Shown: one piece after another, positions 10,482-28,926 of the stretch
Layout: the number at the start of each line of letters is the position of its first letter
Numbering within the stretch: the stretch's first letter is position 1
Sequence record: NC_004629.1
Reading direction: 5' to 3' (one strand)
Length of the DNA: 64,000 bases
Notes under the pieces: generated by a model
Databases searched by the model: none
Seen by the model: the letters and a program-made list of their open reading frames with translations, nothing else
What the model was told of the DNA's origin: nothing
Made by a program: the position numbers and the translations under genes

Positions 10482-12797
10482 ATGGCCCACGGTGAAACTG
10501 GGTTATATCCATTCGACCCCAATGGAACAAATCCCCAGAACTTTATTAAAGGTGAGCGCCAAACTCTCCAGGTACCAGATGGTGATGATTATTATTTCAT
10601 TATACCATTTGCTGCACCTTTCTTTGTAGATTCATTACGACTATTTAACCCACTGACCAATCAGACTTATGTAGAAGGTGTTGATTACCTTATTGGGCAT
10701 TGGTTTATTGAAGCTATGGAATCGATAGGTAGACCTATCGCTGGATCTATACGTATCATGAAGCGTTCGATAAACGCTATGATTGGTATGGATTATCGTA
10801 CAATAGGTGGGCAATGGGGATTTAGTAATCAGCAGATCCTGGCTGAGCTTGCACGCAAACAGTATAACCCCTTGATTCGGTCATGGGGTGCAATTGGTCC
10901 ATTACCTGCTTCTTTCCCACCTTTAGAACACAATCAACCTATTGATTCATTAGTAGGTAGTAAAGAGATTCTTGAAGGTATCGAAGGGATTATAGAAGCT
11001 ATCCGTGCTGCGGCTGCCGGTACAACTGACCAACATATTCATGATTATAATAACCCACACAGGGTAACTAAAGCACAAGTTGGCTTGTCACTAGTTCCAA
11101 ACTATGCAATGGCAAGTGATCAACAGCATTTAGATGCTAATCGTAATGATCTATTTACGAACCCACGTGGTACATTAGCATTAGTTAATAAGTTTGCCGT
11201 AAATCCGCTTAATGCCCACATAGCGGCTAGGGGTAACGTACACGGTCTAACAGCAGCTGATATTAATTTAGGTAATGTTCCTAACTACCCAGCTGCAACA
11301 CCAACTACTGCGGTAGACGTAACTAATGATTCGGTATTATTAACACCTTATACTGCATCTATTCTCTATAGTCAGATTGGTGATGCTTCTAGAATTAATG
11401 AACTAGAAGAGAAACTTAATCAACATATTAGTAATGAAAATAACCCACACGTTGTAACTGCCGACCAGGTTAATGCATATACTAAAACACAAGTTGATCA
11501 ACTACTGGCAGGACTAGGTGGTGGTGATGCTTCTACCTTTGGTGGATTAACACCTGAGCAATGGAAAGATGAATTCCCATCATTCGGTGATATTGAAAGG
11601 ATGGCAGCCGGCTATAACGCTAACTGGGATGATGTACAATTAAAGATAGATACATTACCAGTTATTGTGGATGATACTAGTGAATATGACCGAATGGAAT
11701 TAATTCAAGGTGTCACGGCAGGTTTCCATGCTTATGCTGGATTTAATAGTTGGTGGGATTGTACAATTGTCAGAGATGACTGTGTAGTTCATCCTAAATC
11801 GCCAGCTAACCCTTATGCTGTTATACCAGAGCGTTTAGGATATGCTCAGGAATCCTGGGTATCTCACCGATATGGTCAGTATTGGGTAGAGAATGGTGTA
11901 GCCAAGTCAGCATGTATCGATGAAACTAAAGTCGATGAGATGATACCAATTCCAGTAGAATGGACTGCACCTATAGATGGAAATATTCCTTCAAGTATCT
12001 GGGCGAATAAAACATCTCTGTATATGTTAACAGGTAAGTTCATCTTTAGTTCAACAGGTGAATCAGCAATCTTTGAGCACCAAGATCTTTATCGTTGTGT
12101 TAAAGGTGGTACATCTGAACTATTAGTACCTGCTGCTAATAAACCATGGGCTATATTTACCAATACTGAAGACACCTATCCTGGTGAAATGACAGTTGTT
12201 GTAAACATAGGTCCAGCTAGCAGTGCTGACTATGTATATACAGCTTATGGTATCCCAAGCTTCATTAGTGCTTTTAATGATTTTGTTAACAACACAATTA
12301 AACCATTGAATCATGTTATTGATTCAATGTCAATTGGTTGCACCCACATCATCATGCATTCAATAGATCCATTAGTTGCTCCTGAAGATTATACATCTGA
12401 ATCTAGTAAAGTACATGTCATGGAAATCATCCGCAATGGTAATGATACATCCTTTATGGTTATCTCGCCATTATGGTTTGATGGACGTGGTAACGATGTA
12501 ACTGCTAATGTAAATAGTAACCCAATTGGTGGTGTATCAGGATTGTACACACATTACACAGTGATGTATGGTGATGGCCAAATCGCTTTCTTCGGAAATA
12601 ACGATAATGGACAATGTGACGTAGATGACCATGCTGGACCATATATTCAATTGGCAGCAGGGCATAATTTCACTGTGACAGTAAATACTTTGAATCAAGT
12701 CATGTTCTGGGGAGATTCACCTGATAACTCCTTATTATGGAATGGCAGGGGTACACGTGTGAAACATATTGAACCAACTCCACCCACTGGTCCATAA
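10482..12797 (+). CDS. gp131: Tail tip/baseplate fiber protein with C-terminal beta-propeller, 771 aa
   Basis: Three H..D.NNPH.VT..QVGL repeats. C-terminal RCC1-like segments (FFGNNDNGQC, QLAAGHNFTV, FWGDS). Size matches phiKZ gp131 as recalled. Confidence 0.8.
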   Translation: MAHGETGLYPFDPNGTNPQNFIKGERQTLQVPDGDDYYFIIPFAAPFFVDSLRLFNPLTNQTYVEGVDYLIGHWFIEAMESIGRPIAGSIRIMKRSINAMIGMDYRTIGGQWGFSNQQILAELARKQYNPLIRSWGAIGPLPASFPPLEHNQPIDSLVGSKEILEGIEGIIEAIRAAAAGTTDQHIHDYNNPHRVTKAQVGLSLVPNYAMASDQQHLDANRNDLFTNPRGTLALVNKFAVNPLNAHIAARGNVHGLTAADINLGNVPNYPAATPTTAVDVTNDSVLLTPYTASILYSQIGDASRINELEEKLNQHISNENNPHVVTADQVNAYTKTQVDQLLAGLGGGDASTFGGLTPEQWKDEFPSFGDIERMAAGYNANWDDVQLKIDTLPVIVDDTSEYDRMELIQGVTAGFHAYAGFNSWWDCTIVRDDCVVHPKSPANPYAVIPERLGYAQESWVSHRYGQYWVENGVAKSACIDETKVDEMIPIPVEWTAPIDGNIPSSIWANKTSLYMLTGKFIFSSTGESAIFEHQDLYRCVKGGTSELLVPAANKPWAIFTNTEDTYPGEMTVVVNIGPASSADYVYTAYGIPSFISAFNDFVNNTIKPLNHVIDSMSIGCTHIIMHSIDPLVAPEDYTSESSKVHVMEIIRNGNDTSFMVISPLWFDGRGNDVTANVNSNPIGGVSGLYTHYTVMYGDGQIAFFGNNDNGQCDVDDHAGPYIQLAAGHNFTVTVNTLNQVMFWGDSPDNSLLWNGRGTRVKHIEPTPPTGP

Positions 12798-12809
12798 GAG
12801 GATTTAAAA

Positions 12810-13142
12810 ATGGCAGAAGTTACACGTCAAGAGATGGATGCTCAAATAAATGTTTCTATTAGTAATCAAGGCTTATTTACTAAGGCAGTCCTTAATAAAT
12901 TCATAGCCGTTATTAATAGGATCAATGGGCATATTGCAGCTAGAGGTAACCCACATAATCTGCAACCATCGGATATTGGTCTTGGTAATGTGGCTAACTA
13001 TCGTCCAGCTACTAAGAAGCGTGCACAAGAAGGTTTCAATAACACTACGTACATGACTCCTAAACGGACAGATGATTATAATCGAGTGCACATATACGGT
13101 CCACTTGCGAAATTATTTAATGACGCAGCAGACCGTCTATAA
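12810..13142 (+). CDS. Small tail protein, 110 aa, with one NPH repeat
   Basis: Contains GHIAARGNPHNLQPSDIGLGNVANY, a close match to a gp131 repeat. Confidence 0.75.
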   Translation: MAEVTRQEMDAQINVSISNQGLFTKAVLNKFIAVINRINGHIAARGNPHNLQPSDIGLGNVANYRPATKKRAQEGFNNTTYMTPKRTDDYNRVHIYGPLAKLFNDAADRL

Positions 13143-13158
13143 ACATCTGACCTGGCAT

Positions 13159-13190
13159 AAGAGACACAGCCAAAAGCTGTGTCTCTTTTT
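13159..13190 (+). terminator. Intrinsic terminator
   Basis: GAGACACAGC-caaaa-GCTGTGTCTC followed by TTTTT. Confidence 0.85.
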
Positions 13191-13216
13191 GCTGTTTCAG
13201 TTAAAAGGTATTTCTT

Positions 13217-14605
13217 ATGTATAATCCTATTTTACAATTACCATTTGATCCATTAGGTACAAATCCAGATTGTTTCATTGGTAGCGAGCCTCATACTCTA
13301 GTTCAGTATCAGGGATTCGACTATAGAATCATCAAGTTATATCATGGTGGATTCTATACAAAAGGGTTAGAAGTTTATGATGGTAAATATAATCGTTTAG
13401 TTAAAGATATTGATTATATTGTTACTTATTATCACAAAGATGCTAGTGCGTATGTCGGTCAAGAAATATGTTCAGCAATTGTTTTCTTAAAAACACCTAG
13501 TACACCAATAGTGTATACTTCAGCTCACATGGTAGGCGGTGATCTAGCGTTTAGTTTCACAGTTATCGACGATTATATTAACTGGTGGAAAACAAATGGT
13601 AAGCCAAAGCCAAAAGATCTCGACTACACTGGTAACGAACCATATTGGAAAGACGGTGAGTTAGTTGGCGAACGATGGCATCTTGATACGTATCAGCCTT
13701 ATAATAACGAGATGGAGTGGATAACACAGGCACTCATGGCTGGTGATACAAGCGGTGAAGATGAATACCGTAGTAAAGTTAAAGAGATTTATGATGAGTT
13801 CTTAAAGAAATTTAATGATCGCCTAGAAAAACATATTCAAGATAAAGCTAATCCACACAAGATTACCCCAACTAATGTTGAACTAGGTTTAGTTAATAAC
13901 TTTCCATTGGCTACTCCAGCCATTGCTCAACTAGGTCAATCTAATGCACATTATCTAACACCGCAGTTAGCATATGGCGTATTAGATGAAATAGCTATAA
14001 AACCACTTAATGCCCACATAGCTCGCCGTGATAATCCACATAAAGTCAAAAATACGCATGTACAGTCGTATTTGAAAAGTGATTTTGATTCACGAATTAC
14101 TGGTAAATATTTAAAGACTGATACAGTAGCTAATACTAATATGGTTTATTATAAACCTAAAGGGCAACCAACTGCTACTTTAATGGGTTATAGCGATCTT
14201 ATTTGGTGGATGCGTAAGAACTTTGACACAGACGTGAACTTTACAGCTGGCGATGGCCAGAGTAATGTCATCAATATAAATCGGATTGGTTCCGGGGCAA
14301 TGGGACAATGGAAAGCACCACTCCGTGGGAATGGTATTTTTACACACTTTGATCAATTAGCCACAGAGTATTCATATCCGGTTAAGTTAAAGTTTTATGC
14401 ACTAGGATTACAACCATCCGTGCAAGCAGCATTAGATTTCTGTAGAACTAACTTCACTAATCCAGATGCATGGCCTATTAGATCTACTGTATTCTTCACT
14501 ATTAAAGAACAGAAAATCCAGGCAGCTGGTAACGGATTGATTTTCGTTGATTATACTCCTAACTACGTGTGTTTCCGTTCACAAGGTGGCTGGGTAATTC
14601 CATAA
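13217..14605 (+). CDS. Tail fiber-like structural protein, 462 aa (gp131 paralog)
   Basis: Shares the N-terminal LPFDP.GTNP motif and NPH repeats with gp131. Confidence 0.75.
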   Translation: MYNPILQLPFDPLGTNPDCFIGSEPHTLVQYQGFDYRIIKLYHGGFYTKGLEVYDGKYNRLVKDIDYIVTYYHKDASAYVGQEICSAIVFLKTPSTPIVYTSAHMVGGDLAFSFTVIDDYINWWKTNGKPKPKDLDYTGNEPYWKDGELVGERWHLDTYQPYNNEMEWITQALMAGDTSGEDEYRSKVKEIYDEFLKKFNDRLEKHIQDKANPHKITPTNVELGLVNNFPLATPAIAQLGQSNAHYLTPQLAYGVLDEIAIKPLNAHIARRDNPHKVKNTHVQSYLKSDFDSRITGKYLKTDTVANTNMVYYKPKGQPTATLMGYSDLIWWMRKNFDTDVNFTAGDGQSNVININRIGSGAMGQWKAPLRGNGIFTHFDQLATEYSYPVKLKFYALGLQPSVQAALDFCRTNFTNPDAWPIRSTVFFTIKEQKIQAAGNGLIFVDYTPNYVCFRSQGGWVIP

Positions 14606-14616
14606 GGATAGTTTAG

Positions 14617-15990
14617 ATGAATCCATTACTTTTACCTCTTCCATTTGATGAAACTGGAGAGAGTTATAGTAACCGAACAAAGGGTGAATACCATTCACTA
14701 GCAAAACAGAAAGGATTCCCCTATCGCATCATCGTGATGGATAAGGGTTACTTTTACACTAAAGGAATGGTTATCAGAGATGGTAGGCAGAATGAGTTAA
14801 ATCCAGAAATGGATTATCAGTGTACTGGTATTAATCCAGAAGTAATCGAGAAGACTGGACTTGAAGCGTGTTCAGTAATTGTTATTACAAAACAAGATGT
14901 CCACGAGGATATTTACATTGATGCTCAGATGTGCGGTGGTATATACTGTAACCTTGCCCCTTCCATATCTGAGCATGCTAACGCTCTTTTAAATAATACC
15001 CGTAAACCACATTGGTCTAATATTTTAGATATTCCTGACCAATTTAAACCTAATGGACATATGCATGCCTATTGGGAACTTTATGGTTTTACGCCTAGAG
15101 TTGTTAAGTTAAAAGAAATAACTGACTTATTAAAGAAAAGCTCATCAGACTCATATGACTCCATTTTAGATGAGTTTAAATATCAGTTAAGTCTAATAGA
15201 AGCTGATCTTAATACAATTGAAGCACGACTTACTACACACATCAATGATACCACCACTAACCCACACCAGACACGTAAAGGGCAAGTGGCATTAGGTAAT
15301 GTTTATAATGCTGGCATTGCAACTGAAACACAAGCCAAACAGCCAAATGGCGCTATCATGAATGTCTATGCTACGCCATGGTCAATGAAGTTATCAGTTG
15401 ATACCAATTATACAGTTCAATATCTGGCACACGTTAATGATGTCACCACTAACCCACACAGGGTAACGGCTGAACAATTAAATACGTATACTGTTACTCA
15501 AGCTAATATTTTACTAAATCAAAAATTAGATAAAGGTAAAACAGCCAATACGTCTAAACTTTTATTTGGTCAAGATGTTTATAGCATGGGTGAAACAGTA
15601 CGTGCTAAAATGCCTTTAAGTGTATTGACGACTGGTCGACTAGCACCTGGTAGGATTGGTAATTCAGCTACCTGGCCAGGCCGTGATTGGACATTGATGC
15701 CTAATGGTCAATGGACTCATTTCGGTTTTATATTTAATCGCTTCCAAAAAACAGGAACGATGGTCCACTGGAATAACACCAACTTTAAGTCTATTCAAGA
15801 AGCAATTGCTTTCCATAACACATACTTCTCAGATCCTGAACAATGGTGGCCTGGTTCGTTAGCTATTTGCCATTACGATCAAGAATTCGTTATTGGACAT
15901 GGCAATGGTACAACAGCTACTTCCTATAGGAATACTCTATTCCTACGTAAAGTTGGATCAACGTGGACTAATATAGGGGAACCGGCATAA
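14617..15990 (+). CDS. Tail fiber-like structural protein, 457 aa (gp131 paralog)
   Basis: LPFDETG N-terminal motif and two NPH repeats. Confidence 0.75.
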   Translation: MNPLLLPLPFDETGESYSNRTKGEYHSLAKQKGFPYRIIVMDKGYFYTKGMVIRDGRQNELNPEMDYQCTGINPEVIEKTGLEACSVIVITKQDVHEDIYIDAQMCGGIYCNLAPSISEHANALLNNTRKPHWSNILDIPDQFKPNGHMHAYWELYGFTPRVVKLKEITDLLKKSSSDSYDSILDEFKYQLSLIEADLNTIEARLTTHINDTTTNPHQTRKGQVALGNVYNAGIATETQAKQPNGAIMNVYATPWSMKLSVDTNYTVQYLAHVNDVTTNPHRVTAEQLNTYTVTQANILLNQKLDKGKTANTSKLLFGQDVYSMGETVRAKMPLSVLTTGRLAPGRIGNSATWPGRDWTLMPNGQWTHFGFIFNRFQKTGTMVHWNNTNFKSIQEAIAFHNTYFSDPEQWWPGSLAICHYDQEFVIGHGNGTTATSYRNTLFLRKVGSTWTNIGEPA

Positions 15991-17381
15991 TGATTACTTT
16001 TTTACCATTAGATCTAAAAGCTAAATTAGCATCTAATTACATTGTAGATGAGGATCACACACTTATTCAAGTCAATAATAAAACACATCGCGTACTTATG
16101 TGTACACATGGTGGTTTTTATACTAAGGACTTTAATCTACGTGATAAGAAGACTGGTTTATCTTTAAACAAAGATCAATATAAAACAACCTATCTTTATT
16201 CACAGTTATCTGAAATGACTGGCTTAGAAGTAATGGGTATTGTTGTAGTAACTGATCCTAATGTTAGTCCTAATGTCCAAGTTACATATAGAGCAGTTGG
16301 TGGTTTCTTTAGTATTTCAGCATTAGAACTTAAAGCTGTTTTTGATAAACTTGAATTAGATGAATTAAGTTTCACTTGGGATGATATTATTGGTAAACCC
16401 GATGCATATCCGCCTGCACCTCACGGCCATGAATATTGGCAGATTTATGGCACAGATACAATGGTAACTGAATTAAACCGAATAGCACATGCTTATCGGG
16501 TCGGTAGAAGTGCCATGGATAATGCTGCCGATGATTATTATAAAGTTTATCTCACTGATGCAAAAACCGCTGTGGACGATTATAGAGATCGAGTTACAGC
16601 ACACTTAACTGATTATAATAATCCGCATGCTGATGATCGATTCAAGTTAATTCCACCGCTTGATAAGATATCCAACTGGGGTTTTGCTACTGAAGCTGAG
16701 TCAGTTAATAGAAACGTAAATAATAAATACATGCCAATTGGTGGTATTTATCGTATTCTTAATATTGATACGTTGGCTAAACTTGCAGCACATATTAAAA
16801 ACTTTAATAACCCACATGCTGTCACAGCTGACCAAGTTGGATCATATACCAAACCAGTGATGGATTCTAAAATAACTCCATTATTAGGTATTAATGAACA
16901 AGCTGCTAATGCGACCACTATTGGTGCTACTACTAATAGTCAGGGTTATCCAGTTACTGGAACAGGTAAGGTATATCAGAATTTCTGGAATGATGTTCGA
17001 AAAGATATTCCAGCTGAAGAAGTAACTAGTGGCGTATTTAAATGGAATGCATTAGGTAAAGGTAATGCATCAATATTAAATGACCCTGAGAGATATTATC
17101 TAGCGAGCGATGGTACTTGGCAAGACTGGGTTGAAGCTTTTAAAGAGTGGAACAAAGATAAGATTAAAGCCATTACCTTAGGTCAGGTAAATAGTGAAGC
17201 AGAAGCATTAAACACGTTAAATACGATGTTTACAGATAATACCAAATATCCTGAAGGCACTTACGCTGTTGTAGGTGTTAGAACTAATACCCCCTTTGAA
17301 GCCTATTATTACCAGCAATATGTAGCAGTTAGAAATAATGGTACATGGCGTTGGATGATTCGAGCTGGAGCACTTGTATAA
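15990..17381 (+). CDS. Tail fiber-like structural protein, 463 aa (gp131 paralog)
   Basis: Two NPH repeats; TAATG overlap with the upstream gene. Confidence 0.75.
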   Translation: MITFLPLDLKAKLASNYIVDEDHTLIQVNNKTHRVLMCTHGGFYTKDFNLRDKKTGLSLNKDQYKTTYLYSQLSEMTGLEVMGIVVVTDPNVSPNVQVTYRAVGGFFSISALELKAVFDKLELDELSFTWDDIIGKPDAYPPAPHGHEYWQIYGTDTMVTELNRIAHAYRVGRSAMDNAADDYYKVYLTDAKTAVDDYRDRVTAHLTDYNNPHADDRFKLIPPLDKISNWGFATEAESVNRNVNNKYMPIGGIYRILNIDTLAKLAAHIKNFNNPHAVTADQVGSYTKPVMDSKITPLLGINEQAANATTIGATTNSQGYPVTGTGKVYQNFWNDVRKDIPAEEVTSGVFKWNALGKGNASILNDPERYYLASDGTWQDWVEAFKEWNKDKIKAITLGQVNSEAEALNTLNTMFTDNTKYPEGTYAVVGVRTNTPFEAYYYQQYVAVRNNGTWRWMIRAGALV

Positions 17382-17983
17382 TGAATAATCCGTTATCACT
17401 CCAAGAACTATCTTTAGCTACTGCGCCTACTGAAGATAAAGTAAAAGTACTATTAATGTTTAACCGTACTTCTGAGGTATTCCTACAAAGCGTAGGCTAT
17501 CTACCTTTAGATGCATTCGATGCTAAGTCACGTGAGCACACCATTTTTGTTGAAGCAGAAATGGGTACTTATGATGTAGTCGTAAGTAATACACCTGGTA
17601 AACAACCTACACTTTCTGATTGGAAGATTGTTCCTAAAGAAGAAGCGCCACAAGTGATTACTGAAGATCACTTAAATAGTAAAGTGGCCTACAAAATTAC
17701 TGAACGCTATCCAGTGACTGAGCAAATTAATATCCTTGCACGTGCAATTAAACAGCTAGCTGAAAAATATGGTCAAGAGTTAGATGAACTAGAAGAAATG
17801 CTTGATTATATTGATCTTGTTAAACGAACTAATCGCGCGCATAAGGAGGCCCTAATTGAGAGCCCAGACGTTATCTATAAATCCAGGGAAGATCTCGACG
17901 CTGAGAAAGCACATCGATATGCAGGTGGCCTGCATGAGCTTATCGGCCCACGAAAGATCGACCAAGGACGTGTTTTCAGCTGA
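17381..17983 (+). CDS. Hypothetical protein, about 200 aa, possible tail-fiber assembly factor
   Basis: Start moved from 17345 to the ATG at 17381, which forms a TAATG overlap. The chaperone role is inferred from position only. Confidence 0.6.
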   Translation: MNNPLSLQELSLATAPTEDKVKVLLMFNRTSEVFLQSVGYLPLDAFDAKSREHTIFVEAEMGTYDVVVSNTPGKQPTLSDWKIVPKEEAPQVITEDHLNSKVAYKITERYPVTEQINILARAIKQLAEKYGQELDELEEMLDYIDLVKRTNRAHKEALIESPDVIYKSREDLDAEKAHRYAGGLHELIGPRKIDQGRVFS

Positions 17984-18416
17984 ATTTGCAGCTGACCTTG
18001 TATCTTATCTGGATACACTAGGAGATTCCTGGTGGTTTAATCGGAAAAAAATTAATAGTATCCCAACTAAAGGTATCACTGAATGTGATTATTGGTTTTT
18101 AGGTCATAACCAAATGCCAATGGAATTACGGGAATTACTATTTCATATTGCACCTAAGGTAGAAGGTGCTTGGTTAGGCGAAGTTCTAATCAACCGATAT
18201 GAAATTGGTACAGGTATGCCTGAACACATCGACCAAGCTGTTTATCGTTACAACATGGTTATTGCATTAAATGACAATGGCGATGGTATAACGATCAATG
18301 GTGAGTTTTATCAGGATGTACCAGGTAGGGCTACTATTTTTCCAATCCGTTCAGAGCCACATGAAGTCCCTCCAGTTAAAAATAAAAGATACGTCCTTAT
18401 ATATCTCTACGAGTAG
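17934..18416 (+). CDS. 2OG-Fe(II) dioxygenase-like protein (AlkB/prolyl-hydroxylase fold), about 160 aa
   Basis: LINRYEIGTGMPEHID carries the HxD motif, EPHEV the distal His, and KRY a candidate 2OG-binding Arg. Start set at ATG 17934 after an AGGTGG RBS. Confidence 0.7.
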   Translation: MSLSAHERSTKDVFSAEFAADLVSYLDTLGDSWWFNRKKINSIPTKGITECDYWFLGHNQMPMELRELLFHIAPKVEGAWLGEVLINRYEIGTGMPEHIDQAVYRYNMVIALNDNGDGITINGEFYQDVPGRATIFPIRSEPHEVPPVKNKRYVLIYLYE

Positions 18417-18424
18417 GGTACAAC

Positions 18425-18913
18425 ATGGCAATTAAACTTAAGACTCTATCTAAGACAGAACTAAAAACATTAACAAAGCTTAAAGGTGAAGTTTCATTTA
18501 GAGACTCATATGGCCACCGTATGCGAGTTGGCACTAATGGCCTTAAAGCATGTAGTGTTTATAATACTTCAAAATGGTTTAATTGGACTGCTAAACAGCG
18601 TAAAGAAATTAAACCAATTTTAGGCGAAGAACTATTTAACAAAGCACTGCAAGTATGGTTTTTAGATTTCCCCAAAATAGATGGATTTCTAGATGAGATG
18701 AATTATTGGGTAGATAAACCCGAGTCCGGTACTATTCTTGCTTGGAATATTGGACCTGATGCTAAGTTCATTTTAGATGGTGAGGAACTATTAATTGGAA
18801 AAGGTGAAGGATTAGTATTCCATCTATCCCAATTACATGAAGTAAAACGCTCCCATAATGGACAATCATGGATCTGTGTAATGGTACGTGGTGCTCCTGA
18901 AAAATTTGCTTAA
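18425..18913 (+). CDS. Degenerate 2OG-Fe(II) oxygenase/cupin-fold paralog, 162 aa
   Basis: GEGLVFHLSQLHEV aligns with GRATIFPIRSEPHEV of the upstream gene, but there is no HxD. Confidence 0.55.
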   Translation: MAIKLKTLSKTELKTLTKLKGEVSFRDSYGHRMRVGTNGLKACSVYNTSKWFNWTAKQRKEIKPILGEELFNKALQVWFLDFPKIDGFLDEMNYWVDKPESGTILAWNIGPDAKFILDGEELLIGKGEGLVFHLSQLHEVKRSHNGQSWICVMVRGAPEKFA

Positions 18914-18922
18914 CAGCATAAA

Positions 18923-18942
18923 TCCCCTCCATATGGAGGGGA
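18923..18942 (+). terminator. Hairpin terminator-like
   Basis: TCCCCTCC-atat-GGAGGGGA preceded by ACAGCATAA; no T-tract. Confidence 0.65.
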
Positions 18943-18978
18943 ACTCTTACAAATTTACTCAATAGTACAGTGTACTAA

Positions 18979-19905
<927 letters not shown>

Positions 19906-19907
19906 AT

Positions 19908-20471
19908 ATGCTTAAGCTTCCAGCGAGTGATGAGCCATTTCGGGTACTAGCATTAGACCCTGGTTCACAAAACCTCGGCATAGCTATTCTGGAAGATAAG
20001 TTGGATGGAAGTAATAAGGTGGTACGTAATGCATTTACCTGCCACCTTAAAGATACAAATCCGGCATATGCTGCCATCTCCGAGGTTCATGGTAGTAGAT
20101 TTACTAGAATGCAGCAAATGAGTGATGTGGTACTAAATATACTACATACTGAAAAACCACATGCAGTTATTGTAGAGTCTAACTATCTTGGTAAGTTTGC
20201 CCAAAGCTTCGCTGTACTTGTAGAATGTGTGACCTATGTACATAGAGCATTATACGAGTATGATAGATTTATACCTTTATACATGATTGATCCTACTACA
20301 GTTAAAATCAATGCGGGTATGAAAAAAGTAAAGGGTACTACTAAAGATGATGTTAAAGAAGCAATGCGTTCTCGTACTGACATCACATGGAACATCGATA
20401 TAGATAGTCTAGATGACCACTCTATGGATGCTTGTGCGATAGCTTACTACTACCTTACTAGGATTGTTTAA
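19908..20471 (+). CDS. ruvC: RuvC-like Holliday junction resolvase
   Basis: RVLALDPGS..LG, VIVES and HSMDACAIA give the RuvC acidic active-site pattern. Confidence 0.8.
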   Translation: MLKLPASDEPFRVLALDPGSQNLGIAILEDKLDGSNKVVRNAFTCHLKDTNPAYAAISEVHGSRFTRMQQMSDVVLNILHTEKPHAVIVESNYLGKFAQSFAVLVECVTYVHRALYEYDRFIPLYMIDPTTVKINAGMKKVKGTTKDDVKEAMRSRTDITWNIDIDSLDDHSMDACAIAYYYLTRIV

Positions 20472-23275: not shown

Positions 23276-25645
23276 ATGGCAAATGTTACAGACAAAGGCA
23301 AGATCAGTCAACTGCCGGATCTAGCTACTCTTAACGATAGCGAGTATATTGAATTAATTCATACCGATGCAGCTGGTCAAGTCGATAACTATAAGTTTCC
23401 GCTGTCAAAACTACAGACTGGGGCACCCGGTCTTAGTGCGTACGAGATTGCCGTTAAAAATGGTTTCCAGGGAACTGAAACCGAATGGCTTGATTCGCTT
23501 AAAGGTAAATCTTCTTATCAAATCGCAGTCGATCTAGGTTTCGTTGGTACTGAAGAAGAGTTTATAGCATCCCTTAAAGGTGATGCTGGTAAGAGTGCAT
23601 ATGAAGTAGCTGTGGAAAACGGTTTCCAAGGTACTGAACAGGAATGGTTAACATCACTGCATGCAACCATGACTGCTGAACTACTCCAGTCGCTCTTAAA
23701 TCAACAAGGTTACACAGTTAAAGATGTACTGCGTGTAACTGGCAAGAATGGTGGATTATCATCCAACGCTGCTTTCCATAACTTTGCTTTCCTGTTTGAT
23801 AAGCGTCTAAATCAAGACGACTTAACTGCTGGTGATAAAATACCTCAGCGTATGATGGAACAAGGTCGTATGGAAGCAGAAGGTTATTCTTATCTAAAGA
23901 ACGCTTCTGCGCCCACTACGCAAGGTGCATTACCCGAATTACCTGAGTCTGAAATTCGTATTTATGACAATGGTGAATTCCAGATTGGTAGTTTAACTGA
24001 TTACATTGCATTCAAGAATGACGGTAATATCCGTATTGTTGAAGGCGTTGATGAAACGACCGTTGATCTTAAGAACCTTCCTAAAAATGAAGGTATTAGT
24101 GGCGGTGTATTCGTCAAAGATGTACAAGCAACTGACCCCAGTCAGAACGTAGGTAGTATTGTGCGTACCCCCGATGGGCACAGCGTACAGTCATGCCTAT
24201 CAACTACTAGTAATGTTCGAGTTATCGTTGATGCAATAACTGGACATTCTAGTTATGTACCTAGTGTTAAAATCAATAACATAGATGCAGTTGTAACTCC
24301 TGGCGTTAATCCACCTATGTGGATTGCTACTGCCGATATTGATCTTGGTGCACCCACTACTGAAGGTTATGCTGATATTGTTGTAGAACACGCCGATGGG
24401 GCTAAATTCACTACTAAGGTATTAGCCGATACTCCCGCTAATATTACTAGTGCTGTATTTACTGGCGGTTATCCGTTAGGTCAAACAGAACTTAAAGAAG
24501 ATGACCTTGTTGCAATTAAAGTAGTTACTGATGAAAATATAGTAGCATACGAAATTGCTGACTTTGGTGCACTGAAAGAAAGTAGTGGTACTGTTGCACC
24601 TACTAAAGAACTAGAGGTTACTGGTCTTTACGTAGCTGACCGTGGTAATACTACTAAGGCATATGGTTTCCGTGTACGTGTTCAGAAATCCACTGGTTCA
24701 TGGTCAGAATGGTTTACTTCCAGTGATGCTGGTTCCGAAGATAAAATTAACACCATGCAGTTAAACGATCTTCGCCCAGTTGTTAATATTGGTCAAGTAA
24801 CTTATCCGTCTGGTCAAAGTGCTATTAAAGTAGGTGAAACTGCTACTGTAGCCAATACAGTATCTAATGCTGATAGTGTGGTTTATTCCTCACCAAATGA
24901 TCAGCTCACTATAATCAGTGCAAATGAAGCAGAAATTGCTAAGGTAGTTACTTATAAGTCTGGTACTTATAACGACAGCACTAATAACCTATTAATTACT
25001 GCTAAACGTGCAGCTAATGGTAGTGTAGCTACGGCTACTGCTGTTGTAGCTATTGCAAATGCGGTACCTACTGCGACGGTTACCTACCCTGCTGCTCGCC
25101 TTCGTTCAGGTGGTAACTTTGGAACCCAAGTACAAAGTCATGTCATTACTTTAACCTCTACTCAGAAACTAAGTGCAGCTCCGGCCATGAATGCGCCTGG
25201 CGGTAAGTGGGCTACTGAGGATTGGAAATCTGATGCCACTGGTAAGGTATGGACACGTGCATTACTAGTACATGACGATGATCCTAAAGGAACCTACGAT
25301 TTTAACAGTGTGGTTCTAAAAGGTTTAGCTGGTGTTGAAGCTAATAGTGTAAATGGTGGTACTTACGTACTAGGTGGATTTGTATTCCGCACTCTAAGTG
25401 TGGCTGCTTGGCCGAACCGTGAAACTGATATTGGTACTGAAGTAACCAATACTGGTAAACTACGTTGCAGTAACCTATCTAAAGGTTCTACTGGTAGCTT
25501 AAACTTCACTTATAAGGCGGACGATGCAAATCAAGTTGACACCTACACCATCAAGGATGGCAATAAGTGGTATAACTGTGACTCAGCAAACGCTGTATCC
25601 AACACCACTGGACTGATGAAAATCGAACTTGAGGAAGTAGTATAA
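23276..25645 (+). CDS. Tail fiber/virion appendage protein, 789 aa (gp145-like)
   Basis: KISQLP N-terminal motif, three SAY.IAV.NGF.GTE.EWL.SL repeats, and a Thr/Val-rich beta-sandwich-like C-terminal half. Confidence 0.7.
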   Translation: MANVTDKGKISQLPDLATLNDSEYIELIHTDAAGQVDNYKFPLSKLQTGAPGLSAYEIAVKNGFQGTETEWLDSLKGKSSYQIAVDLGFVGTEEEFIASLKGDAGKSAYEVAVENGFQGTEQEWLTSLHATMTAELLQSLLNQQGYTVKDVLRVTGKNGGLSSNAAFHNFAFLFDKRLNQDDLTAGDKIPQRMMEQGRMEAEGYSYLKNASAPTTQGALPELPESEIRIYDNGEFQIGSLTDYIAFKNDGNIRIVEGVDETTVDLKNLPKNEGISGGVFVKDVQATDPSQNVGSIVRTPDGHSVQSCLSTTSNVRVIVDAITGHSSYVPSVKINNIDAVVTPGVNPPMWIATADIDLGAPTTEGYADIVVEHADGAKFTTKVLADTPANITSAVFTGGYPLGQTELKEDDLVAIKVVTDENIVAYEIADFGALKESSGTVAPTKELEVTGLYVADRGNTTKAYGFRVRVQKSTGSWSEWFTSSDAGSEDKINTMQLNDLRPVVNIGQVTYPSGQSAIKVGETATVANTVSNADSVVYSSPNDQLTIISANEAEIAKVVTYKSGTYNDSTNNLLITAKRAANGSVATATAVVAIANAVPTATVTYPAARLRSGGNFGTQVQSHVITLTSTQKLSAAPAMNAPGGKWATEDWKSDATGKVWTRALLVHDDDPKGTYDFNSVVLKGLAGVEANSVNGGTYVLGGFVFRTLSVAAWPNRETDIGTEVTNTGKLRCSNLSKGSTGSLNFTYKADDANQVDTYTIKDGNKWYNCDSANAVSNTTGLMKIELEEVV

Positions 25646-28600
25646 TGGCTTCTGCATTTGAAGATTATGTAAACGGGGAACTCCCCAAACGGGTATCATC
25701 AATTGATGAACCCACTTCTGTAGTTAATGGACACATCCCGGTTTCTACCGGGGTGGGTCTTAATACCACTTTCGTTGATCCTGTTACTATACCTGGATTA
25801 AAGGGTGAAGATGGTCAGCCGGGTAAAGATGGTGATCAAGGTCCTCCTGGCCCAGTTGGTCCGGCTATTAACATTATCGCTAATGTTGATCTAGCCACAT
25901 TCGAACAAGAAATTAAACCATTAGATACGCATAATGTCGGTGATGCTTGGTTCGTTGAAGATCGGCTATGGGTATGGGAATCACCGCTAGGTAACGAAGA
26001 TCCCCCTGTAAAAGGTCGTTGGGTTGAAACAGGTTCACTTCGTGGTCCAGATGGTACTGGTCTAGTTATCCGTGGTCGTTGGCCTAATAACTTAGAATTA
26101 CCTAAGACTGAAAGTAATAAACCTGGAGATGCTTACTCATGGAATAATCAACTCTGGGCGTGGATGCTTATCTCAGGTAATAATCCGCCAGAGAATCCAA
26201 CTATTGATGACTATGATTGGTTCCCAGTTACACCACAGGGTGAACGTGGACCTGAGGGCCCTGAAGGTCCGCAAGGTAAAGATGGTGAAATTGGTCCTGA
26301 AGGTCCTCAGGGTGAACCAGCAATGCCGTTTACCATTAAGGATTCACTACCATCACCAGCTGATTTACCTGATCCATCTGTAGCTAAAGAATCAGAAGCA
26401 TACTTAGTTACTATGGAAGCTGGTAAACCAGAACATCTATTCATCTTTGTAAAAGGGGCATGGTCAGACCTAGGTACTTTCCAAGGCCCTGAGGGTCCAC
26501 AAGGTAAACCAGGTAATACAGGTGATCCGGGTCCCGATGGTAAACAAGGTGAACCTGGTCCACAAGGTCGTAACTTAGAAGTAGTTAAAGCAGTTGAAAC
26601 TGCTGATGATCTATTAACCACCACTGGTGTAGAACAATACCAAGGTGTTTCAGTACGTTCCACCAATACGGTTTATGTACTGACTGGTCAAGATCCGACT
26701 GTTGATATCTCATGGACAGCCATGGGTTCATTCCGTGGTCCGCAGGGCCCTGAAGGTCCGCAAGGTGAAGATGGCGAACAAGGTCTACCTGGTGAACCAG
26801 GGGCACAAGGTAAATCGGCTTTCCAAGTAGCATTGGACAATGGCTTCACTGGTACTGAGGGTGAATGGTTAATCAGTCTACATGGTAAGAACGTAGTTAT
26901 TACTGGTGCTGTTGCCAATGAGGCAGCCCTGCCGGCAGATGCTCCTGATCAGGCAGCGTACTTCACACAAGACACATCTACCTTATTTGTTAAGATAGAT
27001 GGTAATTGGGTAAATAGTGGTACACATCGAGGTCCTAAAGGTGAAGATGGCGCACCTGGTAAAGACGGTGATCAGGGACCAGAAGGCCCCGAGGGTCCAG
27101 AAGGCCCACAAGGTCCCGCTGGTGAACCTATCCAGATCATCGCAGCGATTGACACTCCTGAAGATACCCCACCAGAAGCACTTGCCGATAACCAATGGAA
27201 AGCATATACTGTTAAGTCCACGGGCGAAGTATTTGTTAACATGGACGGTAGTCGCTGGACTAGCGTTGGTATTATGGCAGGTCCGCAAGGTAAACCGGGT
27301 GAAGGTTTAAACATTAAAGGTGTTTTAACCGATGCTTCACAACTACCAAAGAAAGACACTGATCCTGACTTAGTAACTGGTGATTCATACTGGGTTGAAA
27401 CTAATGAAGGTACAATGCTCTATACTTACCAAGGTCAGGAAATTGATGGCTATATCGGCCCAATTAATCTAAATGGTGAGCAGGGTATCCAGGGTGTCGA
27501 AGGCCCACAAGACCCTGAGGGTAAACAAGGTGGTGGTCTATTAATTATCTATGTTGGTGATGATGCTGGTAAACCAGTAGCATCTACTGATAACGTAGGT
27601 AAAGGTATAGCTATCCATACTGGTACCGAAGGACAAGTAGAAGTATTCGTATGTATTGATACAGCCGGTACATTTACTTGGGAAAGTCTAGGTGTTTTAG
27701 CAATGGGTCCAGAAGGCCCACAAGGACCTGAAGGTAAACAAGGTGTTCAAGGTATACCTGGTAAAACCGGTCAGAAAGGCGAACGTGGATCTTCATGGGT
27801 TATTCTACCAGAAGGTCAAACTGCACCCACTTCTATCGATGGTAATCGTGGTGACTGGTGTATCGACAAAACTGGTACCGTTTGGTATAAAGATGCTAAC
27901 TGGGTTGTATTCTACAAATTAATGTCAGTTCCAGTTAGTGAAGTCGATCCAGAAGATGTCGATAAGAAAATGGTTCGGTACAAACTCGGTTGGACTGAAC
28001 TACCTGTTGATGAGGTGGTAGATGCTGAAGTAGGTGTCTTCTATGGTCGCCGTAAAGCAACCGCTGACGGGGCTGTTGAATGGACTGCTATTGAATTACC
28101 AACACCTGCCATTGATGCTGTACCTAGTCCAGTTGTTAATGCACAATACGTTCGTAAAGGTATTGCAGGTGGTAAAACTGAATGGGCTACCATTACATTC
28201 CCAGAAATTCCTTCAGATGTAGTACGCGATACTGCACAAGCTACTAAGCCTCAAGGTCGTGTAGCTGGTAACTGGGTTGATGTAGCACCTCTGCAAACCG
28301 ATGATACTCTAATGGGTATGCAAAATGGTGAATGGGTAGCTGTACCAGCCGCAGTTATTGGCGAAGTACCTAGTGAAGGCGCTAATGGCACTAACTATGT
28401 ACGTGAGAAAACAGCTAGTGGTTCTAAATGGACACCTGTAACTATTATAGTTGATCAAGCTGATGCTACTAGTGGACAACTATTCCTACGTAACGCTGCG
28501 GCTAAATCATGGACTCTATTCCAAGGTCCGAATAATGATGTAACCGCTGATGGTGATTGGGTACGTAGCCGTACTGGTACTAATATTACTTGGAAGAAGC

Positions 28601-28926
28601 TAGATAAATCATTCGATGTATATAGTCTGAAATCAAGTACATTCACTGGTACAGCTTTAACTCTAACACCAGCTAACCAACAGTGCTATAGGGTTCAAAC
28701 TGCTGCTAACCAAACCATTACACTAGAGAATGGACCTGTTGATCGTATGGTAACGGTTGTTCTTGTACTACTTGGTAAGGTAGCTATGCCAACACTATCT
28801 AGTGCAGTGCTACAGTGGAACAATGGTACTCCATTAATAGTAGATGACCTAGGCGATACTAAAACAATTCTTACTCTCCTATGGGACGGTACTAATTGGG
28901 TAGTTTCCAAAGGTGCTGTTATTTAA
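25645..28926 (+). CDS. Collagen-like tail fiber protein, 1093 aa (gp146-like)
   Basis: Multiple Gly-X-Y runs (e.g. GERGPEGPEGPQGKDGEIGPEGPQGEP) alternate with about eight 50-60 aa globular units. C-terminal EVP...YVRK repeats and a WDGTNW end domain. Confidence 0.85.
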   Translation: MASAFEDYVNGELPKRVSSIDEPTSVVNGHIPVSTGVGLNTTFVDPVTIPGLKGEDGQPGKDGDQGPPGPVGPAINIIANVDLATFEQEIKPLDTHNVGDAWFVEDRLWVWESPLGNEDPPVKGRWVETGSLRGPDGTGLVIRGRWPNNLELPKTESNKPGDAYSWNNQLWAWMLISGNNPPENPTIDDYDWFPVTPQGERGPEGPEGPQGKDGEIGPEGPQGEPAMPFTIKDSLPSPADLPDPSVAKESEAYLVTMEAGKPEHLFIFVKGAWSDLGTFQGPEGPQGKPGNTGDPGPDGKQGEPGPQGRNLEVVKAVETADDLLTTTGVEQYQGVSVRSTNTVYVLTGQDPTVDISWTAMGSFRGPQGPEGPQGEDGEQGLPGEPGAQGKSAFQVALDNGFTGTEGEWLISLHGKNVVITGAVANEAALPADAPDQAAYFTQDTSTLFVKIDGNWVNSGTHRGPKGEDGAPGKDGDQGPEGPEGPEGPQGPAGEPIQIIAAIDTPEDTPPEALADNQWKAYTVKSTGEVFVNMDGSRWTSVGIMAGPQGKPGEGLNIKGVLTDASQLPKKDTDPDLVTGDSYWVETNEGTMLYTYQGQEIDGYIGPINLNGEQGIQGVEGPQDPEGKQGGGLLIIYVGDDAGKPVASTDNVGKGIAIHTGTEGQVEVFVCIDTAGTFTWESLGVLAMGPEGPQGPEGKQGVQGIPGKTGQKGERGSSWVILPEGQTAPTSIDGNRGDWCIDKTGTVWYKDANWVVFYKLMSVPVSEVDPEDVDKKMVRYKLGWTELPVDEVVDAEVGVFYGRRKATADGAVEWTAIELPTPAIDAVPSPVVNAQYVRKGIAGGKTEWATITFPEIPSDVVRDTAQATKPQGRVAGNWVDVAPLQTDDTLMGMQNGEWVAVPAAVIGEVPSEGANGTNYVREKTASGSKWTPVTIIVDQADATSGQLFLRNAAAKSWTLFQGPNNDVTADGDWVRSRTGTNITWKKLDKSFDVYSLKSSTFTGTALTLTPANQQCYRVQTAANQTITLENGPVDRMVTVVLVLLGKVAMPTLSSAVLQWNNGTPLIVDDLGDTKTILTLLWDGTNWVVSKGAVI

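Follow-up and report, generated by a model that had tools for sequence, protein, structure and literature searches.

Tail-fiber assembly chaperones, e.g., T4 gp57A and gp38 and the Tfa proteins of phages Mu and P2, are non-virion or loosely bound proteins whose genes lie directly 3' of fiber genes. 2-Oxoglutarate (2OG) oxygenases are common in phages, and the substrate is known for almost none of them; it is likewise unassigned for the phage 2OG-Fe(II) oxygenases of PHROG 61 (PMC12774648). The phiKZ genes encoding gp136, gp137, and gp138, referred to here as the trio, resemble the T4, Mu, and P2 chaperone genes in occupying the post-fiber position, but the sequences are unrelated: gp137 and gp138 have an oxygenase fold, with a complete catalytic site in gp137, and gp136 has no Pfam match. 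Like the PF13640-type hydroxylases with which it was compared (PBCV-1, 5c5t; mimivirus L230, 6ax7/9nev; human LH3; the Pseudomonas putida EF-Tu prolyl hydroxylase, 4iw3; and PHD2), gp137 combines a double-stranded beta-helix, an HxD...H triad, and a basic 2OG-binding residue, and its best Foldseek matches are enzymes of this type, some of them virus-encoded (E = 1e-6 to 1e-5, TM 0.6-0.7). It differs from them in being much smaller (160 aa), in sharing 14-19% identity, in possessing a conserved N-terminal region of its own, and in always being accompanied by a dead paralog and by gp136; furthermore, collagen-like substrates do not co-occur with it. With the AlkB family gp137 shares an N-x-Y...H-x-D segment that aligns to ALKBH8, and the top fold matches of gp138 are ALKBH7, NMAD-1, and ALKBH5. 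Unlike AlkB proteins, gp137 is acidic, falls far under the PF13532 cut-off, and is found in a tail-fiber rather than a DNA/RNA metabolism context. The 2OG-Fe(II) oxygenases of cyanophages and other phages (BFVD: S-RIM50, S-T4) are, like gp137, small and prolyl-hydroxylase-like, whereas gp137 is set apart from these and from the PHROG 61 proteins by its membership of a separate group, PHROG 2297, by its association with a pseudo-oxygenase and gp136, and by its fixed site in fiber clusters.

A three-gene locus downstream of the phiKZ tail-fiber paralogs

The window, i.e., the whole stretch of 64,000 nucleotides that was analyzed, corresponds with 100% identity to bases 124001-188000 of Pseudomonas phage phiKZ (NC_004629/AF399011), and the record coordinate is the window coordinate plus 124000. 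The relevant features, in window coordinates, are as follows.

10482..17381, + strand: PHIKZ131-135, paralogous baseplate/tail-fiber proteins directly 5' of the trio (RefSeq features, with virion mass-spectrometry notes)
17381..17983, + strand: PHIKZ136, 200 aa, 5'-most gene of the trio (RefSeq CDS; PHROG 13209)
17923..17936, + strand: Shine-Dalgarno-like aggtgg (17923-17928) and the gp137 ATG (17934), read directly from the sequence
17934..18416, + strand: PHIKZ137, 160 aa, predicted Fe(II)/2-oxoglutarate oxygenase of minimal size, all catalytic residues present
18425..18913, + strand: PHIKZ138, 162 aa, diverged gp137 paralog that keeps the fold
25645..28926, + strand: PHIKZ146, collagen-like fiber protein (Pfam Collagen, E = 6.4e-24), on the same strand as gp137 and 6.7 kb downstream

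The first-pass annotation had proposed that an active and a degenerate oxygenase follow the fiber paralogs and together hydroxylate fiber or collagen residues. Both reading frames do lie 3' of the paralogs, the RefSeq features giving the order gp131-135, gp136, gp137, gp138. The gp136 and gp137 reading frames overlap by 50 nt, and the aggtgg element and ATG of gp137 fall within the gp136 codons for a conserved C-terminal G-G-L-H-E. On the basis of homolog alignment, the ATG at 17934 was preferred as the gp137 start to an upstream TTG at 17856.

gp137 is a small predicted Fe(II)/2OG oxygenase

The HxD...H...R signature initially read in gp137 is real and comprises N87-x-Y89, H98-x-D100, H143, and R152. 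All six residues were invariant in 27 of 27 relatives and then in 51 of 51 distinct relatives, which argues that catalysis by gp137 matters; strict purifying selection acts on the metal- and cosubstrate-binding residues. The protein scores 25.8 bits (E = 2.1e-5) against Pfam PF13640, for which the cut-off is 27 bits, and 19 of the 27 relatives match this family (E < 0.01). An AF2 model of gp137 (pLDDT 92.3) has a double-stranded beta-helix core and gave 258 PDB matches with Foldseek at E ≤ 0.001; the top ones are all 2OG oxygenases with a probability of 1.0, and both protein hydroxylases and AlkB-type enzymes are found among the matches. Searches of the PDB with single sequences returned only noise. 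The N-terminal region is strongly conserved and peculiar to the gp137 family. The RefSeq record calls gp137 a "DNA endonuclease", a label that derives from PHROG 2297 and has been copied into many derived records.

gp138 is very probably a pseudo-oxygenase

The second frame had been described as keeping the fold of the first while losing HxD, and this description holds. The gp138 AF2 model (pLDDT 96.9) matches 2OG oxygenase structures, with ALKBH7, NMAD-1, ALKBH5, and PHD-type enzymes found by Foldseek at E = 4e-6. The position of the first His of HxD is Trp in 45 of 49 relatives (or 48 of 56) and His in none, the distal His is aligned and is present in 45 of 49, and the position of the 2OG-binding Arg is occupied by Arg in 5 of 49. 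Because the first metal-binding His is lost, and the 2OG-binding Arg usually so, gp138 is very probably not an oxygenase.

BLASTP of gp137 against gp138 gave no match, and the paralogy is visible only with profiles. The two families align by hhalign (94.7%, E = 6e-8, 136 columns, distal His aligned), the gp138-family HMM matches gp137 at E = 1.9e-5, and the gp137 model superimposes on PhiPA3 gp157, an ortholog of gp138, with a TM of 0.73. We class gp138 as a remote paralog of gp137 and very probably a pseudo-oxygenase. The catalytic plus scaffold heterodimer suggested in the first-pass annotation is plausible, the one hint of it being opposite charges: gp138 is basic (pI 9.2) and gp137 acidic (pI 5.2; median of the gp137 family, 5.9). 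A word-based homolog search recovered only near-identical gp138 proteins, and further relatives came with an exhaustive search, from whose output two long hits were dropped: P0131, an RTX repeat protein, and P0107, an odd sequence.

The third protein, gp136, is acidic (pI 5.1) and mostly helical, and its family is unassigned in Pfam. Neither 16 gp136 relatives nor their profile found a Pfam or PDB relative. By sequence gp136 is not a member of the tail-fiber assembly chaperone families (Caudo_TAP etc.); its gene position alone is analogous. The sequences of the trio show neither a signal peptide nor a membrane segment.

The trio is linked to tail-fiber genes in unrelated Pseudomonas phages

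The genes for gp136, gp137, and gp138 are neighbors in 59 of 59 loci examined, with a gp136 homolog beside the gp137-gp138 pair wherever a contig end does not intervene. The order 136-137-138 is found in most of the 59 loci and 136-138-137 in six. Carriers include chimalliviruses, uncultured lineages, the T4-like phage Milchi, and QdP_Psa3, a phage of 115 kb. In a set of 50,697 phage records, the three genes were found in 71, 72, and 72 records, respectively, every one a Pseudomonas phage. Two genome scans with reduced alignments yielded one 633-bp MAG contig and nothing else.

The proposed tie between the gp137-gp138 pair and the tail module is borne out by these loci: the invariant trio is situated within the tail-fiber clusters of several unrelated phage lineages. 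It lies among fiber genes in phiKZ and 201phi2-1, in the baseplate cluster of Milchi immediately 3' of a collar-fiber gene, and 3' of a tail fiber gene in QdP_Psa3. On metagenomic contigs it is found 3' of PF12571 tail-fiber proteins, and in the IMG/VR loci it is flanked on both sides by proteins matching PHROG tail-fiber families. Across the unrelated phage loci examined, the trio was never beside DNA-metabolism genes, and no small-molecule biosynthetic genes are near it in phiKZ, Milchi, or QdP_Psa3.

Expression, virion status, and mutagenesis data

At 15 min of phiKZ infection, transcripts of gp136, gp137, and gp138 reach 1712, 1419, and 1809 RPKM, a level comparable to that of the fiber genes gp131 and gp133-135 (773-2621 RPKM). 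The notes in the 201phi2-1 and phiKZ records cite mass spectrometry for the flanking fiber proteins and not for gp136-138, which are non-virion in the sense that phage records do not list them as virion components. In published TnSeq data, orf137 has 577 reads at 2 sites, and orf136, orf138, and orf131-135 have zero. A separate TSS is located 5' of orf139, and polar effects could be a partial cause of the absence of insertions in orf136 and orf138. Three antisense oligomers had no effect, a null result that carries little weight, as those directed at the portal and terminase genes were also ineffective. PHIKZ136, PHIKZ137, and PHIKZ138 are unmentioned in the main text of any publication found in our literature search, and a search on tail-fiber hydroxylases returned nothing relevant.

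A candidate accessory module for fiber maturation

Because the trio is confined to the tail-fiber gene clusters of unrelated Pseudomonas phages, it most likely aids fiber maturation. The explanation we favor, tentatively and at slightly less than an even chance, is that gp136-138 form a single non-virion accessory module of tail-fiber clusters, in which an oxygenase and its pseudo-oxygenase paralog act with a helical protein in the maturation of fibers. In such a scheme, gp136 and gp138 would hold the fiber polypeptide during tail-fiber assembly, either as a chaperone or as a substrate-presenting partner, and gp138 may pair with gp137. The gp137 enzyme would then oxidize, and most likely hydroxylate, a side chain of the fiber protein or of a partner; the target would not specifically be collagen. 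The modification would be useful under some conditions and not essential, given that disruption of gp137 is tolerated in laboratory infection.

As clients of the trio, gp131-135 are the likeliest candidates. A C-terminal domain is common to phiKZ gp133-135 and the QdP_Psa3 fiber that precedes the trio (E = 2.5e-9); this domain was found in chimalliviruses, in QdP_Psa3, weakly in two IMG/VR loci (L038 and L047), and nowhere else. An N-P-H repeat of the fibers is confined to chimalliviruses and one contig, and pairwise similarity among the remaining trio-adjacent fibers is weak. We sought a client motif universal to trio-adjacent fibers and found none, which counts against the favored explanation, as do the dispensability of gp137 in TnSeq and its closest profile match, ALKBH8.

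A bolder proposal, which we consider possible but on the doubtful side, is that the trio is the first phage system to oxidize a tail-fiber protein enzymatically, consisting of an active oxygenase, a pseudo-oxygenase paralog, and a helical adaptor. It would be horizontally exchanged with fiber modules among unrelated Pseudomonas phages and, in particular circumstances, would tune how stable the fiber is or how it binds its receptor. The fixed three-gene architecture, the fiber-adjacent position, the enzyme/pseudoenzyme pair, and the well-studied model phage make the trio a sharply defined, testable case. If fibers are oxidatively modified, this would add a new layer to the building of receptor-binding organelles, would bear on the interpretation of fiber structures, and would matter for annotation of a protein that now carries an endonuclease label.

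Alternative explanations

The trio might be near fiber genes for some other reason, which we judge to be unlikely, although it fares better than the remaining alternatives. The gp136 and gp138 proteins might be pure folding chaperones, with gp137 acting on a small molecule, or the module might alter a component of the host envelope or a receptor. Receptor-blocking genes adjoin receptor-binding genes in other phages, e.g., llp of T5, and the trio occupies the usual site of tail-fiber assembly chaperones. Among cultured phages the carriers, which are of unrelated lineages, are limited to one host genus, suggesting a host-specific role, and the TnSeq pattern, with gp137 dispensable and gp136 and gp138 free of insertions, is also in favor of this alternative. 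The invariance of the gp137 catalytic site in all 51 relatives argues against this alternative, as do the lack of a visible signal peptide or membrane segment and the lack of nearby small-molecule biosynthetic genes.

We consider it very unlikely that gp137 belongs to the AlkB-type enzymes that demethylate or repair nucleic acid and lies in the tail module by coincidence; the first-pass annotation had named an AlkB-type demethylase as its alternative. Profile searches place ALKBH8 (E = 0.009), and not a protein hydroxylase, nearest to gp137 among solved proteins, and the N-x-Y...H-x-D segment that aligns to it also aligns weakly to ALKBH5. The N-x-Y 2OG-binding motif before HxD is present, with N87 and Y89 invariant; PF13532 is touched weakly by 4 of the 27 gp137 relatives; and AlkB and ALKBH5 are among the fold matches of gp137, as AlkB homologs are at the top of those of gp138. 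Set against these similarities, gp137 itself scores 13.3 bits against PF13532, for which the cut-off is 31.2, and its acidic net charge, shared by the family, argues against the nucleotide-recognition lid and basic nucleic-acid-binding surface of AlkB enzymes. The strict linkage to gp136 and fiber genes across unrelated phages, with DNA-metabolism genes never adjoining, also speaks against it, and gp137 is absent from a survey of jumbo-phage DNA-modification genes. The AlkB alternative is thus disfavored by gene context and charge.

The least probable reading makes gp137 a prolyl (or lysyl) hydroxylase of collagen, scaffolded by gp138 and stabilizing the triple helices of gp146: the best structural neighbors of gp137 include LH3, the collagen prolyl hydroxylase of PBCV-1, and L230 of mimivirus, and the collagen-like fiber noted downstream is present, but the distribution of the trio is against collagen as the substrate. 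The six collagen-like runs of gp146 contain 57 G-X-Y triplets in total, with 24 prolines at X and 11 at Y. The fibers that adjoin the trio are non-collagen, and the complete genomes of Milchi and QdP_Psa3 contain the trio and no collagen-like gene. Phage 201phi2-1 has kept the trio, and its collagen-like segments have a Y-position Pro in 1 of 27 triplets. In approximately 26 uncultured non-chimallivirus trio loci, a collagen-like gene within 7 kb is absent except in one (L056), and the collagen-like protein encoded there has 0 prolines at Y. Co-occurrence of the pair with collagen fibers, expected from the original proposal, therefore fails; the intact oxygenase, the degenerate paralog, and the tie to the tail module are supported, and the collagen substrate is not. 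In bacteria and phages, collagen-like proteins assemble into stable triple helices that lack hydroxyproline, which we also count against a collagen hydroxylase. A G-X-Y run in QdP_Psa3 was rejected as collagen, since it arises from reading a Pro/Thr-rich linker on the antisense strand.

A fibre-linked three-gene module in Pseudomonas phages

Window positions 17300-19000 are 100% identical to bases 141300-143000 of Pseudomonas phage phiKZ (AF399011/NC_004629), so the window corresponds to phiKZ 124001-188000. The relevant genes, in window coordinates, are:

10482-17381: PHIKZ131-135, paralogous baseplate/fibre proteins upstream of PHIKZ136
17381-17983: PHIKZ136, preceding PHIKZ137
17934-18416: PHIKZ137, 160 aa
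18425-18913: PHIKZ138, 162 aa
19009-19905: gp139, full-length DUF7208 protein (E 1e-117)
19908-20471: gp140, PHROG 159, RuvC-like Holliday junction resolvase (E 1e-38), with a weak Pfam RuvC match
25645-28926: PHIKZ146, collagen-like

As the first-pass annotation stated, the gp137-gp138 pair directly follows the fibre paralogues and a putative chaperone gene (PHIKZ131-135, then 136-137-138), a context repeated elsewhere. In 201phi2-1 the fibre paralogues are likewise followed by gp221, gp222, and gp223. In the T4-like, 175-kb Pseudomonas phage Milchi, the trio belongs to the baseplate cluster and immediately follows a collar-fibre gene; in the 115-kb QdP_Psa3, the gene just before it encodes a tail fibre. 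Both phages have gp136 homologues (E 4e-27 and 4e-13, respectively). A domain found at the C-terminus of phiKZ gp133-135 and of 201phi2-1 gp218-220 is also present in the fibre that precedes the trio in QdP_Psa3 (E 2.5e-9). On metagenomic contigs with distant gp138 relatives, a gene for a PF12571 tail-fibre protein is followed by a gp136-like gene and then by the pair, whose two members are in some cases swapped (138-137).

Scanning IMG/VR with the gp137 alignment gave 51 loci. The three families are contiguous in 59/59 loci examined, three of them cut by a contig end; most have the order 136-137-138, and six have 136-138-137. In the non-chimallivirus loci, the genes flanking the trio on both sides match PHROG tail-fibre families. 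A search of 50,697 phage records places gp136, gp137, and gp138 in 71, 72, and 72 of them, all Pseudomonas phages, and distant queries retrieve the same set. In 185,579 bacterial and archaeal genomes, pattern-limited scans yielded a single 633-bp MAG contig. The trio is an invariant, fibre-linked module, horizontally shared among unrelated Pseudomonas phages. Its architecture and fibre linkage appear to be undescribed, and our literature search did not find a paper discussing the PHIKZ136-138 genes.

The overlap between the gp136 and gp137 genes is 50 nt long in both phiKZ and 201phi2-1 (locus L002, 11447-11496) and 35 nt in QdP_Psa3 (L004, 9995-10029). The gp137 ribosome-binding site aggtgg (17923-17928) and ATG lie within codons of the conserved C-terminal G-G-[LIV]-H-E motif of gp136, which may therefore be doubly constrained. 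The predicted pI is acidic for gp136 (5.1) and gp137 (5.2) and basic for gp138 (9.2), and family medians agree.

The neighbouring fibre proteins gp131, gp133, gp134, and gp135 (10482-17381) each carry two copies of the repeat H-x-x-[DN]-x-x-x-N-P-H-x-[VT], and the translated gp134 and gp135 also show an H-x-H pair. Other chimallivirus fibres and one metagenomic fibre (L005) share the N-P-H repeat, which the remaining trio-adjacent fibres lack. Milchi also has a distal long-tail-fibre subunit encoded separately; a small gene comes next, and the trio is missing there (L064, 29736-33369). Elsewhere in its genome, a further cupin-type protein is annotated as 'cysteine dioxygenase' (L066, 12255-12707).

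Expression and proposed role of the module

At 15 min post-infection, transcripts of gp136, gp137, and gp138 (1712, 1419, and 1809 RPKM) match those of gp131 and gp133-135 in abundance (773-2621 RPKM). In the record notes, virion mass spectrometry is given as evidence for the neighbouring fibre proteins, and no such entry accompanies gp136-138 or the corresponding 201phi2-1 proteins; on these records the module is non-virion. In a phiKZ transposon screen, orf137 received 577 reads at two sites, and orf131-135, orf136, orf138, orf139, and orf140 received none (bioRxiv 10.1101/2025.11.23.690004, Table S2). Three antisense oligomers against PHIKZ137 left plaque counts unaffected, which is weak evidence because portal and terminase oligomers were likewise without effect (PMC12571901). 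A separate transcription start site lies upstream of orf139, whose counterpart in 201phi2-1 has been detected in the virion by mass spectrometry; gp140, also free of insertions, is placed between structural and lysis genes.

We infer that the module aids fibre maturation: gp136 and gp138 would be holding or presenting partners, and gp137 would add an oxidative modification, useful but dispensable in laboratory infection. We consider a chaperone-only or host-directed role for the trio less likely.

gp137 is a predicted intact oxygenase

Both sequence and modelled fold identify gp137 as an intact, small Fe(II)/2OG oxygenase with predicted turnover. Its PF13640 (2OG-FeII_Oxy_3) match, 25.8 bits with E 2.1e-5, falls just short of the 27-bit cut-off. 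Of 64 homologues recovered, 27 were aligned, and N87, Y89, H98, D100, H143, and R152 are invariant; the same six positions are conserved in 51/51 distinct sequences from all lineages collected, at identities down to ~30%, bearing out the HxD...H...R signature previously read in this ORF. The AlphaFold2 model (pLDDT 92.3, pTM 0.87) best matches a PiuC-like oxygenase (3dkq), lysyl hydroxylase LH3, the PBCV-1 collagen prolyl hydroxylase, a P. putida prolyl hydroxylase, and mimivirus L230 (E 1e-6 to 1e-5, TM 0.6-0.7), with ALKBH5 and AlkB ranking slightly below. The nearest solved protein by sequence profile is ALKBH8, via the N-x-Y...H-x-D segment (E 0.009), which would favour an AlkB-type nucleic-acid enzyme; however, AlkB-type PF13532 scores only 13 bits, and we regard this reading as highly improbable. 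Since fold neighbours and profile match disagree, the sub-family is ambiguous and cannot alone name the substrate.

The RefSeq name 'DNA endonuclease' for gp137 traces to PHROG 2297 (E 4e-56) without other support, and nothing in its sequence, fold, or residues is nuclease-like. The label has propagated into many phiKZ-like records. The enzyme family is known. The phage Churi record and UniProt (Psa21) already name the protein a 2OG oxygenase.

gp138 is a predicted pseudo-oxygenase paralogue

gp138 matches neither gp137 by BLASTP nor any Pfam family. An exhaustive search yielded 73 cluster representatives, and a profile built from 56 of them aligns with the gp137 profile over 136 columns (94.7% probability, E 6e-8), distal His residues included; the gp138-family HMM also matches gp137 directly (E 1.9e-5). 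The gp138 model (pLDDT 96.9) matches ALKBH7, NMAD-1, ALKBH5, ABH2, and PHD-type oxygenases, and superposition of the gp137 model on gp138's PhiPA3 orthologue gives TM 0.73. At the H98 position the family has Trp in 45/49 sequences and His in 0/49, Arg occupies the Arg152 position in only 5/49, and the distal His is retained in 45/49, in agreement with the earlier description of a degenerate second ORF with the same beta-strand pattern. Certain positions are conserved (S44 49/49, D90 46/49, W95 45/49; G127 55/56 and F132 52/56 in the 56-sequence alignment) while the H98 and R152 equivalents are lost, which argues that the scaffold is under selection and oxygenase chemistry is not. gp138 is thus classed, from sequence and model, as a putative pseudo-oxygenase paralogue of gp137.

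Several relatives of 207-229 aa (among P0107 and P0116-P0133) match in two stretches, indicating an insertion, and one 534-aa protein has eight matches to the N-terminal third of gp138. A match to a 1916-aa RTX protein was spurious.

The module and collagen-like fibres

The downstream gp146 is a genuine collagen-like protein (Pfam Collagen, E 6e-24), and its six G-X-Y runs (57 triplets) contain 24 X-position and 11 Y-position prolines, as the first-pass annotation had recognized in part. The collagen part of its proposal, that the pair hydroxylates fibre or collagen residues, did not hold. The complete QdP_Psa3 and Milchi genomes contain the trio, and a collagen-like gene was not found in either; the one G-X-Y run in QdP_Psa3, of 12 triplets (L009, 30321-31499), is an artefact, being antisense to the part of a 392-aa minus-strand gene that encodes a Pro/Thr/Asp-rich linker. 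Within 7 kb of the trio in uncultured non-chimallivirus loci, a collagen-like gene was found only in L056, and its product has no Y-position proline. In 201phi2-1 the collagen-like segments are rich in Thr, Asn, and Asp, and proline takes the Y position in 1/27 triplets. Because the trio occurs without collagen-like genes, or with ones poor in Y-position proline, the conserved function of the gp137-gp138 pair is not collagen prolyl hydroxylation, and a collagen hydroxylase is scarcely credible despite the gp146 prolines. In 201phi2-1, gp230 (L002, 16514-20956) joins gp145-like and gp146-like parts in a single protein, with collagen-like segments of mainly G-T-N and G-T-D triplets, in contrast to the proline-rich triplets of phiKZ gp146.
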